Below are positions 6,039 through 26,781 of a stretch of DNA of 64,000 bases, one piece after another. A program made the translations under genes and the position numbers. Location of the stretch: positions 124,001 through 188,000 of IMG/VR virus record IMGVR_UViG_3300034682_000176. One strand, given 5' to 3'. The number at the start of each line of letters is the position of its first letter. Position 1 is the stretch's first letter. A model generated the notes under the pieces. It was given only the letters and a program-made list of their open reading frames with translations. It did no database searches and had not been told where the DNA came from.

Positions 6039-7409
6039 ATGTCGATCTTCCAACTCCAACCAGATTCGCCCGCTGTTAGTAACATCGAGAGCGTACCTAC
6101 TGCGTTGCAAAAGCCCCGCGATTCGCTGTTCACGCCTTTGTTCCCTGAAGCCCAGGCGGACTCTTTGCTCAAGTACGTCGAAGGCTACCCTTGGACTTGC
6201 TACTTCTACGGTCAGTTGGTTGCCCAGTCCAACAGCCTGGAGCACTTTGACCCTGGCACACCCAACATGACTCAGCCGGTCTACGAGATCAAGAACATGA
6301 TCTTGCAGGTCACCTCTCCCTTAACCCCCAATTACGACCCGGCCAGCGGAAGCACCACTTCGACAGGTTCGGCGCTGGTACCATTGGGGGTTAAACCCAA
6401 CACAGGCGATTCATTCATTGCCCAGATCGACACCGGCGAAGATGCGATCTTTGTGATCAACAGCGTTGAGCGTACCACGTACCGCAAGAGTGCGATGTAC
6501 ATCATCAACTACAGCCTGTACACCTACGTCTCGGCACAGCCAGAGTTTGTGGAAGCTTTAAACAAACGCGTCCAGCAGACGTTCTACTTCAACAAGGACG
6601 CCAACTACTTCAACCGTGATCTACTGTTGTCGCCCAGCGTGCACCACGCCAATGAACGCCTGAAGGAATTCATGCGTGAATCGCAGCAGTACTACATGCA
6701 AACGTTCAGCGACAAGGTAGCTGGCACCATTGTGCTGCCCGGTGTCTCTCGCACGCTGTACGACCCGCTGCTGCTACAGTTCCTGGGTCGCTTTATCGAC
6801 CATGAAGTCAAGGCTTCACACCCATGGTTCCAGTACACCTGGGACAATCGTTATCTGCAACAAAAGTCGATCTTGGACTTGCTGATGACTCGCAACCCGT
6901 CCATGGTGAATGTCATCAACACCGACTACAGCTTTACCTCAACAGCCCAGCTCAAGGGTCCTGCTCGGTTTGGTAACATCTTCCACACCACGGTGGACTA
7001 CGTGCTGTACCCCAAGAATCCAACGACCATGTTGGACGTGGACACGCTGCATTTCCATGGCCCTGCGGAAACTTTCTCTCCCATCCACCAAAACTCCAAA
7101 GCGTACTTTGAGAGCGACCTGACAGTGCACTCCGGCAACACTGAAGTGGGTGTGGAAAAGAAACTGTTGCACTCGCTGTTCGAGCAAGACTGCTACATCG
7201 TCTCCCCAGCGTTCTACCCATTTTTCAAGTCCAACATTGAACCAGAAGCCGTCAGCTTTGTGGAAGTGTTGATTGCGCGCTTCATTCGCCGAGAGGCCAT
7301 TGCGCGGGAAGACTTGCTGAAGGTGGTGGAGAGTTTTTACAGCTGGAGCCCTATGCACCAGCTGTACCTTTTGCCTGTGATGTGGCTTATTATTCGTGCC
7401 ACTGTGTAA
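6039..7409 (+). CDS. phiKZ-like conserved virion structural protein (456 aa)
   Basis: SD aagga; late-type motif gattttgtga at 6005; LLKYVEGYPW and P-N-GD-F-A segments resemble conserved jumbo-phage virion proteins. Confidence 0.65.
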   Translation: MSIFQLQPDSPAVSNIESVPTALQKPRDSLFTPLFPEAQADSLLKYVEGYPWTCYFYGQLVAQSNSLEHFDPGTPNMTQPVYEIKNMILQVTSPLTPNYDPASGSTTSTGSALVPLGVKPNTGDSFIAQIDTGEDAIFVINSVERTTYRKSAMYIINYSLYTYVSAQPEFVEALNKRVQQTFYFNKDANYFNRDLLLSPSVHHANERLKEFMRESQQYYMQTFSDKVAGTIVLPGVSRTLYDPLLLQFLGRFIDHEVKASHPWFQYTWDNRYLQQKSILDLLMTRNPSMVNVINTDYSFTSTAQLKGPARFGNIFHTTVDYVLYPKNPTTMLDVDTLHFHGPAETFSPIHQNSKAYFESDLTVHSGNTEVGVEKKLLHSLFEQDCYIVSPAFYPFFKSNIEPEAVSFVEVLIARFIRREAIAREDLLKVVESFYSWSPMHQLYLLPVMWLIIRATV

Positions 7410-22513: not shown

Positions 22514-24883
22514 ATGGCAGTTAGCATCATCGAGAAAGTGCTCGGTAACAACAAGTTCTACACCGACGCTTACATCAAAGACACCATCACCCTGGTCAAA
22601 TCTATCACGGTCAAAAACGACAAAGAAGCCCGGTTGTACAACGACTATCTGAAGCAAATCCAACCCAACTTTGTAGAAGAAGATGACCGCGCTCAGTGGC
22701 AGTACTACCGACACCTGGTAGGACAACCTTACCCCACTGACCGACCCATTCTCGCCACTTCGGTGGACAATGGGGAAGAATTCACCTTCAACAAAGACAG
22801 CATGTTGGTGCACCGTCGCACCCATGAAGAGTTGCTCAAGTTCGGCCTGTACTACGAAGAGCTGGTGCGCCGTTACCCTGAGCTGGAGCTGTACATCAAG
22901 GGCGTGATCACCACCCCGCTGTTTACCAATGTGCAACAGATCATCGATGCCGAAGACTTCACGATCGTCTCTTACGCCAAACACCTGGTGGAAGAAAACG
23001 AGCACGACGTCATGTCCCAGCTGCAGTTGCGCATCGACAGCTACAAATCCACTTGGCTGATGGGTTTTTATGCCATGGTCGACAACTTGTTCTTGGCCAG
23101 CCAGTACCACATCTTGTACAACTTCCTGTGCACCAGTTTGTTGTCGATCCGTTTGGCCAATGCCAAGACCAACAACGCCCACAGCTACCACATCCGTCTG
23201 TACCTGGCCAGCCACCACTACCTGGACGATGTGTTGTTGTTCTTGACCAAATCCCAGCAATTGTTCCTGTACCGCAACATGCTGTACCTGAACAACCATG
23301 CGGGCTCCAACTTCACGTTTCAAACCCTGATCGACGTGCTCTTCAGTGAGCGCAACATCTCGGTGATCAACTACGTCTACCAGCAACGCAACACGGTCAA
23401 TAACCAAGGGCTGATGCAGTACCGCTACCGTCAAAAACTGCTCAACACCAAAAAGCTGGTGATCAACACCGCAGACATGAGCTTGGAGACGGTGGGTGCC
23501 AAAGAGCGGGATCTGGCCCCTGGCAATGGTGCGGTCTATGACTACAACCTGCCAGCCATTGATTTCCGTCACCGCAATGCGTTGTTCAGCGAACTGTTGA
23601 CCAAGGATCTGGAAACCATCTTGCTTGATGAAACCGATTCGGTCAAGTACAAACTGCTGCAAATCCTCACCGACAGCTGGGCACGCTTGTTGGTGGATGA
23701 CCGGGTTTCTTTCTTGGTTGAGATCCCAGATCCTACCAGCAGCATCAGCACTCGCATGGGTGTGCGGGACCTGTTTAAGCTGTACCTGGTGGTGCTGTAT
23801 GCGTCGCAAGGCATTTCCCTCAAGCAGTTCCCCACCTACCGCATCCAGCGCGTCTTCAAGCAAGTCTTACCTGATGTTGAAGACTTGCTCAAGGGTTGCT
23901 ACGACATGGACTCGTTGCAGCGTGACTACCTGCGTCAGTTGCTGGAGTTGGTGCCCACCTACCAGTACTACCTGACCAGTTACCAGTTTGAGCAGTACGT
24001 GACCATGGTCTACAAGCTCAACATCGGTTTGTGGACCGCGTTGTCCAACTACAGCGACATGGATACCGAAGGCCAGATGAGCTGGGCCATCAGCCAGGTT
24101 CATGAACACATGGACTTTGATGTAGACCCTGTCGAATCGGTGGACGACTTCTTGGACCGTACAGGTTTGTCCGACCCACGTGGCTACGATGCGATCCAGT
24201 TGCAGACATACCTGTTCGATATCCTGGACAATGCCTACGACAAGAAGCTGTCGTTCTTGAGCCGCTTCCAAAAGCTGCAAGACGCCTTGACCAAGGTGTT
24301 CTTCAAGTTCAACAGCTACACCGTGCAGTTGATCAACAACTACTACGCTGATGCACCATTGTTGGTGGGTGCCAAAGACACCCGCTACACCCACACGGAC
24401 TCGACGGTCTATGACTTGACGCTGGCCGCCGAAGGCAGCTTTGGACACGGCCTGATCACCGACCAGACTTCGTCCCTGTTGTCAATGCACCACCAACCTT
24501 CGGTCTCGGACATCCTCCACCATAGCAAGCTGGGCGCTGACATTGAGATTGACGGCGTGTTGGACTTTGATATCCAACACAGCTACCAAACTGACCAACT
24601 GCTGCCGCTCACCCAGCTGCTGTTGACCGAGGTGGTGTCCGCCAGCCGCAACCATGTCGATGCCACCATGCTGGATTCGGCAAAGTTCTTCCCTGCCAGC
24701 GATGTCTCGTCGCTGTCGTTCATCTCTGTTGGCGTCGCTTCCCACTTCCGAGAAGACTCGTTGTTGACCGAAAACACGTTGGCTTCTATGCCAATTAACA
24801 TTGGTTTTGCAGCACAAAACCTCTCGTCACCACCGACCCAATCTAGTGAATCCGATTTGCTGTTCTTGGCCATCAATCTTTAA
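22514..24883 (+). CDS. virion structural protein (phiKZ gp128-like)
   Basis: 789 aa; W-YY-HL-G, AHSYHI--YLASH and LFLYRN--YL motifs; divergent from the portal gene. Confidence 0.7.
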   Translation: MAVSIIEKVLGNNKFYTDAYIKDTITLVKSITVKNDKEARLYNDYLKQIQPNFVEEDDRAQWQYYRHLVGQPYPTDRPILATSVDNGEEFTFNKDSMLVHRRTHEELLKFGLYYEELVRRYPELELYIKGVITTPLFTNVQQIIDAEDFTIVSYAKHLVEENEHDVMSQLQLRIDSYKSTWLMGFYAMVDNLFLASQYHILYNFLCTSLLSIRLANAKTNNAHSYHIRLYLASHHYLDDVLLFLTKSQQLFLYRNMLYLNNHAGSNFTFQTLIDVLFSERNISVINYVYQQRNTVNNQGLMQYRYRQKLLNTKKLVINTADMSLETVGAKERDLAPGNGAVYDYNLPAIDFRHRNALFSELLTKDLETILLDETDSVKYKLLQILTDSWARLLVDDRVSFLVEIPDPTSSISTRMGVRDLFKLYLVVLYASQGISLKQFPTYRIQRVFKQVLPDVEDLLKGCYDMDSLQRDYLRQLLELVPTYQYYLTSYQFEQYVTMVYKLNIGLWTALSNYSDMDTEGQMSWAISQVHEHMDFDVDPVESVDDFLDRTGLSDPRGYDAIQLQTYLFDILDNAYDKKLSFLSRFQKLQDALTKVFFKFNSYTVQLINNYYADAPLLVGAKDTRYTHTDSTVYDLTLAAEGSFGHGLITDQTSSLLSMHHQPSVSDILHHSKLGADIEIDGVLDFDIQHSYQTDQLLPLTQLLLTEVVSASRNHVDATMLDSAKFFPASDVSSLSFISVGVASHFREDSLLTENTLASMPINIGFAAQNLSSPPTQSSESDLLFLAINL

Positions 24884-24899
24884 GTAGGAGCCCTTTCAT

Positions 24900-24920
24900 A
24901 TGGAAACCGTGCATAGTTGA
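24900..24920 (+). pseudogene. orphaned gene start (METVHS*), duplicate of the downstream gene's N-terminus
   Basis: SD aggag then ATG GAA ACC GTG; the gene at 25948 also starts METV. Confidence 0.55.
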
Positions 24921-25042
24921 CAATGTGTCAGACGGCTGCTGCCGCCAGTAGTTGCGGGTCAGTATGGTGTTTTAGACACCATACTGACTTTCACTCTACT
25001 CAACTTAGACGGTTAAGGTTTTACTATTTAAGGGTGTTGCAA

Positions 25043-25906
25043 ATGGATAACAACTTAACACGAGACGACAAAGACAAAGTAGGCCTTTACATTGTCCGAA
25101 ACAAGACAACTAAAGAGTTCTACCTTGGGAGCGGTCGTCTGGTTCAGAGACTGAAATATCACGAACGCGAATTGACCAACAACCGTCACATAAACCACAA
25201 ACTACAGAAATCTTTCAACAAAAACCCTGATATGGAATTTGTTGCTACAATTATAGATCTAGAAGGTTTGACTGTGGAAGATAATCGAAAACTTGCGTTA
25301 GGGAGTGAGCAAGTTTTTATCGATAAATTTAAAGATAGTTCTCTATTGCTAAATTTAGCTATGAAAGTCGACAACCCTACGTTTGGGACCAATCTTTCAG
25401 CAGACCATAAAGAAAAAATTAGTAAGGGGGTTAAAGAAAGATGGAGCAATATGTCTGATGAAGAAAAGAAATCCCACAGTGAAAAAATAAGTAAGGCTCA
25501 GAACGAACACTGGTCTAAGATACCAAAAGAAGAAAAAGAAGCCAGAATAGAAACGCTTAGACATGCAAATATTGGGGTTCCTCTATCTGACAAACGTAAA
25601 AAAGAAGTAAGTGACTTCTTTAGAGGTAAAAACCTAACCTCCTCTCATAAAGAAAAGATAGGCAACGCGTTAAAAGGGAAACCTAAAAATCCCGATGCTG
25701 TTAAGAACGCAGTTAACGCTAGAAAAGAAAAGGGTTCTTACGGCCCTAATGAAAACCAGATGCGGTTATGCGGACAGCCGGTTACCGTCGATGGTGAATT
25801 TTTTGTTAGTGTGTCCGCATGTGCAAAGGCTAAGAATGTTTCTCGCCAAACAGTCATAAATAGAGTTCGTAACAACAACTTTCCTGGCTGGGCTCAAAAC
25901 TCTTAA
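25043..25906 (+). mobile_element. free-standing GIY-YIG homing endonuclease with NUMOD3-like repeats and C-terminal HTH
   Basis: GLY-x10-YLGS, R---H and HINHKLQ-SFNK motifs; repeated H/K-KEKIS/G motifs; markedly AT-rich compared with its flanks. Confidence 0.88.
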
Positions 25907-25947
25907 CTTGCACACTTATTGATTAAAACTTGGAAAGAGGTCTTACT

Positions 25948-26781
25948 ATGGAAACAGTCACCAGATCGATTTATGCAGCCCACCTGCAGACGTGCAAACT
26001 CCTGAACAAACCCTTCACGGTTTTGGAGAACTCGACGCTGAACCAAAAGTTCAACGTCTACCCGGAAGAGCAACCGGCTGTCAACGCTTACCCGAATCTG
26101 TCCGGCATCACCATTGGCAACAAGGGCGCCACGTACGACATCGGTCAAGGCAACTACGTGTTGACCACCCCAATCCCTCACCTGGCACGCCACGCCAGCC
26201 TGTACAACCACATCCCGTTTGTGGTGCGCCACATCACCAACGATCTGACACCGGCCGAGCGTCTGATGTACCGCCTGCGTGTACCACTGCAAATCGGTGG
26301 TGAGAAGTACTTTGCGTACTACATGCGTGTGCTGGACCTGAACACGGTGGTACCAACGGTGGAGCTGCGCAACGTCAGCGACGGTGTGATCACCAACACC
26401 CCGTTCACTCCCGAGCAGTCCGACCTGGCGCCTGTCCACCCAGTCATCACCAACAACGGTCTGAACACGACCGACGGCGACTACCTGGTCTCCACGGCCA
26501 AGATGGTGTTCACGCTCAACCAGCAAGACATCGTCAACATCCGCGAAGCCTGCCAGATCCTGTACGGCGACCCACGCTACGCCGTGATCAACGAAATCGG
26601 TATCTGCACAGGTATTGACAAAATTGTTTCTGGCCAATTGGGTGGTTCGACCATCAACTACACTGAAAGTGTGGTGACCCAACTGGCAGCCTTCCTGTCC
26701 CAGTATCACGCGCTGACTGCCAGCACAGCTGAAGTCAAGATCGGCTTGAATGTCGGTAGCGTGGAAGCCCTGATCGTCTGA
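25948..26781 (+). CDS. conserved virion structural protein
   Basis: SD gagg; NSTLNQKF, LYNHIPFVVR-ITNDL and AVINEIGICTG motifs typical of phiKZ-like virion proteins. Confidence 0.75.
   Translation: METVTRSIYAAHLQTCKLLNKPFTVLENSTLNQKFNVYPEEQPAVNAYPNLSGITIGNKGATYDIGQGNYVLTTPIPHLARHASLYNHIPFVVRHITNDLTPAERLMYRLRVPLQIGGEKYFAYYMRVLDLNTVVPTVELRNVSDGVITNTPFTPEQSDLAPVHPVITNNGLNTTDGDYLVSTAKMVFTLNQQDIVNIREACQILYGDPRYAVINEIGICTGIDKIVSGQLGGSTINYTESVVTQLAAFLSQYHALTASTAEVKIGLNVGSVEALIV

Follow-up and report, generated by a model that had tools for sequence, protein, structure and literature searches.

The 64,000-nucleotide stretch of DNA analysed here (the window) comprises bases 124001-188000 of a 224,810-bp viral record, IMGVR_UViG_3300034682_000176, which has direct terminal repeats and belongs to a phiKZ-like jumbo phage. 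Inside the structural-gene block of this phage the first codons of a virion gene, here called geneB, have probably been invaded by a free-standing cassette encoding an I-TevI-like GIY-YIG endonuclease, and in this estimate we include the cut and repair path proposed below. Comparison with nearly isogenic genomes shows that the occupied allele is the empty allele in which nucleotides (nt) 15-21 of geneB (ACGCACC) are replaced by a cassette of 1055 nt. Of the old start, 14 nt persist as a dead mini-open reading frame (ORF) of six codons, and geneB is rebuilt in one piece, with two residue changes and no need for splicing.

Empty and occupied alleles of geneB

Public contigs were aligned to positions 24300-26600 of the window (2301 nt). 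In runs X2, X4 and X8 a contig joins position 24913 to position 25969, skipping 1055 nt and having only ACGCACC between. The empty allele reads ATGGAAACCGTGCA-ACGCACC-ATTTATGC; the occupied allele consists of the same 14 nt, 1055 nt that end in a Shine-Dalgarno sequence (SD) plus ATGGAAACAGTCACCAGATCG, and then ATTTATGC. Both forms are present in run X2, which belongs to the same study as the source of the window. That run X8 represents RNA is a guess; the joined form is also found in DNA runs and is therefore an allele and not a spliced RNA. Separate mismatch-free contigs cover the two occupied junctions in X2, a contig of X3 covers the left one, and the 224.8-kb record also carries both.

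Empty contigs L034-L036 were reached via their geneB protein, P0131, from which the geneB protein of the window differs solely by Q5T and T7S. Over the 4813 nt downstream of the joint L036 has no mismatch and L035 one mismatch to the window; L034 spans the empty site and shows 26 mismatches in the 4 kb upstream. Between the empty and the restored start 9 of 21 positions differ, all of them in gene nt 9-21, and the alleles are identical from nt 22 onwards. The codon changes from empty to restored are ACC>ACA, GTG>GTC, CAA>ACC, CGC>AGA and ACC>TCG, three of which are synonymous and two (Q5T and T7S) non-synonymous.

An earlier reading of the locus, made from the letters of the window alone (the sequence-only reading), had placed the insertion a few codons into a virion gene and had anticipated that in relatives free of the endonuclease the upstream METV start would be continuous with that gene. 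The 24913/25969 joint in near-isogenic empty contigs bears out the former. The latter agrees with the isogenic contigs and with more diverged relatives: the endonuclease is absent from ten contigs of a relative with 97% identity and from one contig of a relative with 87%, and these contigs have the same stop and 16-nt spacer and then run with ATGGAAACCGTG directly into geneB. METVQR in the same layout is widespread among more distant relatives. Occupied and empty alleles with a converted flank exist at one site in near-isogenic genomes, as expected of a homing element that moves by double-strand-break repair.

Contigs of several samples (runs X2 and X3) end exactly at 24884/24913 or 25969/25985, and L035 and L036 end 39 and 16 nt, respectively, before the geneB ATG. 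Contig ends at the junctions are the pattern expected of an assembly bubble in which occupied and empty genomes coexist.

In the occupied locus, where all features lie on the + strand, the native intergenic spacer GTAGGAGCCCTTTCAT with the original geneB SD (AGGAG) is found at 24884..24899 and is identical in the endonuclease-free contigs L006-L015 and L034-L036. It is followed by the remnant of the original geneB start, ATGGAAACCGTGCA (24900..24913), identical to nt 1-14 of the empty allele. The METV start with an early stop noted by the sequence-only reading is indeed present, as METVHS-stop (ATG GAA ACC GTG CAT AGT TGA, 24900-24920), the mini-ORF opened by the remnant; only its extent needed correction, the remnant being 14 nt long, not 12. 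The inserted cassette, delimited by the contig joints, occupies 24914..25968 in place of the 7 nt of the empty allele. Between the mini-ORF and the endonuclease ORF lies a structured stretch of 130 nt, and the 5' module of the cassette contains a hairpin or palindrome of 16 bp (24956..24990; fold z-score -7.2, minus-strand self-match). The endonuclease gene (25043..25906; 287 amino acids, aa) has its own ATG at 25043 and a TAA at 25904-25906. Downstream, a new cassette-borne SD for geneB seen in the sequence, GGAAAGAGG (25932..25940), precedes the replacement start ATGGAAACAGTCACCAGATCG (25948..25968), 21 nt or seven codons (ATG GAA ACA GTC ACC AGA TCG). The new SD and METVTR start that the same reading had noted at an intact gene are therefore confirmed, with the ATG at 25948 opening an ORF of 277 aa.

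The cassette is the sole AT-rich island in the 224.8-kb genome and is present as a single copy, and it is therefore foreign to this genome; the GC content of the endonuclease ORF is 38.9%, compared with 52.6% for the genome. Between the remnant start and the hairpin, positions 24927-24957 (GTCAGACGGCTGCTGCCGCC...) are GC-rich, unlike the AT-rich rest of the cassette, and have neither another copy in the genome nor a counterpart in the related cassettes L022 and L027; this segment may be filler DNA from the joining event. A scan of the + strand of the cassette for sigma-70 promoters and intrinsic terminators found none, and no T-run follows the hairpins of 16-21 bp in this and the related cassettes. 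That the hairpin is regulatory or terminator-like is a guess. The string TTACTAT, common to both cassette SD regions, was dropped as a signal after it showed no enrichment in the genome.

The gene upstream, geneA (22514..24883, + strand; stop TAA at 24881-24883), is a virion structural gene of 789 aa assigned to phrog_3222. Its syntenic counterparts are AGENTSMITH_65 and the 789-aa genes of L008, L016 and L034. In contig L018 (4-2082), which encodes the same geneB protein as L017, two ORFs of 292 and 326 aa stand upstream instead of a single geneA of 790 aa, so that geneA is either broken or replaced there. GeneB itself (25948..26781, + strand) encodes an intact 277-aa DUF7208 protein (Pfam E value 1.9e-86) homologous to phiKZ gp139. 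Relatives were collected by a word search with geneB, by which many were obtained. Homologues occur in 290 phage records, phiKZ gp139 among them, and several depositors have annotated them as virion structural proteins. The nearest isolate is phage AgentSmith (58.5% at the aa level), whose gene order is that of the window, namely a virion gene of ~730 aa, 16 nt, a gene of 277 aa and, after it, a RuvC-like gene. Neither megablast nor blastn returned a DNA match to the region from the phage collection, relatives being found at the protein level only. With 277 aa the product of the restored geneB has its full length, and it aligns collinearly with homologues from residue 1. Within the family residues 22-37 are most conserved, not residues 3-7, and position 5 is most often Thr (43%).

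The endonuclease, its predicted cut site and competing explanations

The endonuclease is free-standing in that it is a separate ORF with its own start and stop, out of frame with geneB and not accompanied by an Rfam intron. It matches PHROG 314 (phrog_314, 'homing endonuclease') with an E value of 1.9e-19, and a profile built from the enzyme together with nine homologues matches the I-TevI catalytic domain (PDB 1mk0/1ln0, E 8e-11). The GIY and YIG motifs (GLY..YLG) and residues R36, H40, H49, E89 and N104 are invariant in 10 homologues. All ten match PF01541 (best E 1.9e-6), with the window's own protein below threshold (E 0.044), and all ten match PF20987, the DNA-binding domain of I-TevI with its C-terminal helix-turn-helix (HTH; best E 2.9e-7). 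NUMOD3 was found in nine and NUMOD1 in seven of them, and the window protein's own matches to C-terminal DNA-binding domains are weak (E 0.07-0.1). A zinc-finger linker as in I-TevI was not detected. Based on these profile matches the protein is classified as a predicted I-TevI-like GIY-YIG endonuclease with a modular C-terminal DNA-binding region. It is full length relative to its homologues and therefore looks intact and functional. An AlphaFold2 model of the enzyme was not used as its pLDDT of 62 was too low.

I-TevI cleaves ~15 bp upstream of the site that it binds, nicking the sequence 5'-CA^AC|G-3', of which C1 and G5 are the critical positions (PMC5009752). The empty alleles of L016 and L034-L036 have an exact CAACG at gene nt 13-17. 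The left junction of the cassette follows the CA, which is the position of the bottom-strand nick of CAACG in the I-TevI pattern, and the 7 lost nt begin at that position and end where donor and recipient become identical. No CNNNG is present in the first 45 nt of the restored start. Taking I-TevI as a guide, we propose that the enzyme would bind the conserved 5' part of geneB and, in the empty allele, cut within CA^AC|G (nt 13-17). The right end, minus the 7 unmatched nt removed with the trimmed 3' tail, would prime copying of a cassette-bearing donor in which the cassette stands ahead of a slightly different allele of geneB. The left end, blunt after ...GTGCA, would be joined illegitimately to the cassette or, alternatively, by homology to a pre-existing remnant. 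The occupied genome would then be immune, since the motif in its native context survives in neither of the two starts. We thus predict that the empty allele is cleaved and the occupied one immune. The view of the sequence-only reading that the element destroyed its own cut site gains strength from the CAACG at the junction, although it is still a prediction.

Several points weigh against this proposal. The cut site is deduced by analogy with a distant relative, the match to I-TevI being limited to the catalytic domain, and I-BmoI, a relative of I-TevI, prefers another motif (PMC5009752). The restored start of L022 keeps a CNNNG (CCAGG), the junction in L022 lying elsewhere. Free-standing endonucleases of phage T4 usually cut far from their insertion site (PMC2988022). 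The replacement tract could be a neutral passenger, given that Thr is the commonest residue at position 5 (43%) and that the N terminus METVTRSIY is found on other backgrounds. Finally, all occupied contigs come from one study.

Some of these points also favour an explanation that we consider unlikely, though it deserves more weight than any other competitor. The endonuclease might cut elsewhere, deeper in geneB or in geneA, or be inactive; the duplicated start and the replacement tract would then be by-products of a single illegitimate recombination with a donor phage and have no role in immunity. This would fit with T4 free-standing endonucleases cutting hundreds of bp from their own genes (PMC2988022), with the 21-nt tract corresponding to a natural allele, with the CNNNG retained in the restored start of L022, and with the geneB protein being most conserved at residues 22-37 and not at residues 3-7. 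It does not account, however, for the coincidence of the junction with the bottom-strand nick of an exact CAACG, for which we estimate a chance of about 1 in several hundred with both registers and both orientations allowed. Nor does it account for the start of the 7 lost nt at that very nick, or for the confinement of all nine differences to 13 nt around the motif, with 4.8 kb beyond being identical. On the I-TevI analogy, the anatomy of the junction would point to a cut at the insertion site, unlike the distant cuts of the Seg enzymes.

Much less probable is a self-splicing intron, of group I or another kind, whose removal from the mRNA restores geneB. I-TevI, itself a phage GIY-YIG enzyme, is intron-encoded, and the 5' module of the cassette is strongly structured. 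However, an Rfam search of 24700-26200 with E values up to 10 found no intron family, only chance matches of microRNA models on the hairpin. GeneB has its own SD and ATG and a full-length N terminus collinear with homologues, a splice from 24913 to 25969 would shift the reading frame and leave out ACGCACC, and the joined form is present in DNA runs. The view of the sequence-only reading that the gene is restored without splicing holds on each of these counts. A group I intron with an endonuclease ORF was rejected as a candidate since no ribozyme family matched in Rfam and removal of the insert leaves a frameshift. An endonuclease-split gene was likewise rejected, the upstream piece being just 14 nt (the six-codon mini-ORF) and the downstream ORF having its full length of 277 aa.

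Loss of endonuclease genes is a known phenomenon, and the contigs do break at the junctions. Even so, it is hardly credible that the endonuclease-free form has lost the cassette through a deletion or that the occupied form was mis-assembled, because a deletion between the two starts is unable to recreate CAACGCACC, METVQR with the same layout is widespread in more distant relatives, and both occupied junctions are mismatch-free in the 224.8-kb record and in separate contigs of X2 and X3. The empty form is accordingly judged to be ancestral, because the 7 lost nt could not be regenerated from the occupied allele and because METVQR is so widespread; the change is an insertion, not a deletion.

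Origin of the replacement start and related cassettes

At 19 of its 21 positions the replacement start agrees with a natural allele that is found, free of the endonuclease, in a related lineage (L017-L020). The tract is therefore most simply read as the donor's natural allele, introduced as a very short conversion tract (~13 nt), and not as bespoke recoding. A tract of ~45 nt, first deduced from the 97% relative L008, was replaced by the 13-nt estimate after comparison with the isogenic empty alleles. The synonymous recoding of the 5' end that the sequence-only reading had postulated thus stands in part: over a tract of 21 nt and seven codons, three changed codons are synonymous and two of the five (Q5T and T7S) are not. 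The same reading had called ACA and AGA rare, and across 126 long ORFs of the genome AGA accounts for 2.6% of Arg codons and ACA for 13.6% of Thr codons; the argument nevertheless fails to discriminate as the empty alleles also carry a rare codon in the start stretch (CTA, 1.9%). Codon rarity was discarded as a signal, the mean score of the first 15 codons being no worse than that of the empty allele. The repeat between the remnant and the restored start (10 of 12 positions) is not significant alone, and proof comes from the comparison with relatives.

Within the 90% cluster of geneB, METVTRSIY recurs on two or more further sequence backgrounds (P0134, P0137 and P0141). The same cluster also contains METVQRTIY, which is empty and has CAACG, and METVNRTVY. 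The endonuclease cluster consists of one sequence only, on two contigs, and the METVTRSIY copies elsewhere may therefore be cassette-free resistant alleles, footprints of cassette loss, or contigs broken at the cassette.

Other, AT-richer relatives (L021, L022, L023-25, L028, L029 and L033) carry homologues of the endonuclease, with 47-64% aa identity, at the same geneA|geneB junction. Two types can be told apart. Members of the 293-aa type (L021, L023-25, L028, L029, L033 and two P0126 places) start behind the native AGGAG, at a distance of 9-12 nt from the stop of geneA. At their 3' end all homologous cassettes have an SD of the AGAAAGGA type, which serves geneB in the 293-aa type. In L021 (2240-2270), L023 (4980-5010), L028 (1425-1455) and L029 (3975-4010) the endonuclease ATG lies behind the native AGGAG(TCTT) SD; in L022 an AGGAG(TCTT) SD precedes the remnant geneB start. 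The 293-aa endonucleases appear from this arrangement to have taken over the original translation start site of geneB, with geneB using the cassette SD. Their ORFs and geneB both begin with ATGGA, which is a possible microhomology at the left junction.

The second type, of 287-290 aa, is represented by the window, L022 and L027 and has a 5' hairpin module and a remnant geneB start of varying length. The hairpins (24956-24990 in the window, 1632-1667 in L022 and 114-158 in L027) are conserved and perfect, comprise 16-21 bp and lie ~55 nt upstream of the endonuclease start. Their core is CAGTATGGTG/CACCATACTG, with compensatory T>C and A>G changes in L027, and their fold z-scores range from -6 to -10. 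No such hairpin is present in the 293-aa subfamily. L027, a contig of 1114 nt, encodes the closest endonuclease homologue (64% aa). Ahead of its remnant lies a diverged cassette 3' end consisting of a stop, spacer and SD (L027:1-110 and 1040-1114; ~80% over ~50 nt), and the same cassette 3' end recurs after the endonuclease gene. This layout suggests two tandem cassettes in L027 or the re-invasion of an already replaced start.

Other nuclease-related genes were seen nearby. An extra DUF723 (PF05265) ORF directly follows geneB, and an ORF with an SNase domain lies a few genes further on (L021:4086-4835 and 6239-6592; also L023:8225-8770). DUF723 is a zinc-finger DNA-binding domain discussed in connection with phage homing endonucleases (PMC10448857). 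It is possible that nuclease insertions have a hot spot in this gene block. Nothing useful came from scanning viral_contigs with the geneB protein, with three junction or start patterns and with the endonuclease alignment; a metagenome scan with that alignment recovered L028 again and a fragment but nothing else.

It is tempting to speculate that the SD and the first seven codons are an integral, selected part of a portable cassette adapted to intronless life inside a coding sequence, and that successive variants re-invade replaced starts in an arms race fought over the first codons. The occurrence of the same family at one junction in several lineages, the varying remnant lengths in the window, L022 and L027, and the second 3' end in L027 hint in this direction. 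We nevertheless regard the idea as tentative and rather doubtful.

Relation to known mobile elements

The Seg endonucleases of T4 resemble the element described here as free-standing GIY-YIG enzymes between or at the edge of conserved genes whose presence varies among close relatives, with a co-converted donor flank and a promoter-less cassette that supplies expression signals to the gene downstream (PMC2988022). They differ in that the insert in the window lies in the coding sequence, 14 nt from the geneB ATG and at the predicted cut site, whereas Seg enzymes cut hundreds of bp away (PMC2988022). In addition, the conversion tract in the window spans only ~13 nt and a dead copy of the start is left. 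I-TevI, encoded by the td intron of T4, has in common with the present enzyme its catalytic domain, NUMOD3 and DNA-binding HTH, and CAACG is found at the junction of the empty allele. Unlike the td element, the cassette in the window has no intron, and a replacement start mends the gene in place of splicing; cleavage by the window enzyme is predicted.

Cassettes within coding regions are represented by mobE in nrdA of phage Aeh1, mobA in gene 39/60 of T4 and seg in gene 43 of phage 25 (PMC2988022). Like the cassette in the window, such elements bring translation signals and further sequence that preserves the function of the host gene and protects the occupied allele, this protection being a prediction in the case of the window. 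In those split genes both halves are functional cistrons, whereas in the window the 5' piece (4 and 2/3 codons) is discarded and replaced and geneB remains one polypeptide. A cassette of mobA and a bypass element was reportedly the subject of work by Bonocora et al. in 2011. Conceptually the nearest parallel is provided by free-standing GIY-YIG and LAGLIDADG ORFs of fungal mitochondria associated with partial C-terminal duplications of atp6 and cob, where a replacement gene end and a displaced pseudo-fragment are also found (PMC6279837). The fungal elements affect the 3' end and thus the C terminus of organellar genes, whereas the window element concerns the 5' end plus the SD of a phage gene for which an isogenic empty site is available. 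The Allomyces atp6 element is said to go back to Paquin et al. (1994).

A further related system is gp210 of the nucleus-forming jumbo phage PhiPA3, which is likewise phiKZ-like. This homing endonuclease is directed at a gene that a close relative cannot do without, and recoding of the target restores viability (PMC11620839). By contrast to the window element, which is known from sequence, gp210 is an intron-borne HNH enzyme whose target is an RNA polymerase subunit, and its competitive effect was demonstrated experimentally. In the literature we found no description of a phage cassette replacing the 5' end plus SD of its target, with the reservation that coverage was incomplete and this is not proof of absence.

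The arrangement of geneB represents a third way for a homing endonuclease to sit in an essential coding region, beside introns or inteins and the splitting of genes: the first codons are discarded, and new ones are supplied together with an SD. With isogenic empty and occupied alleles at hand the event has been caught almost in the act, and from the junctions both the repair path and, to the base, the cut site (CA^AC|G, nt 13-17) can be predicted. For genome annotation, the finding explains the dead mini-ORF of six codons and cautions that the geneB virion protein may begin with chimeric residues. Few homing endonucleases have been described from phiKZ-like jumbo phages, and the present element extends this short list by one of the free-standing GIY-YIG kind. 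Enzymes of this sort have been shown to determine which of two co-infecting relatives prevails in these phages (PMC11620839).

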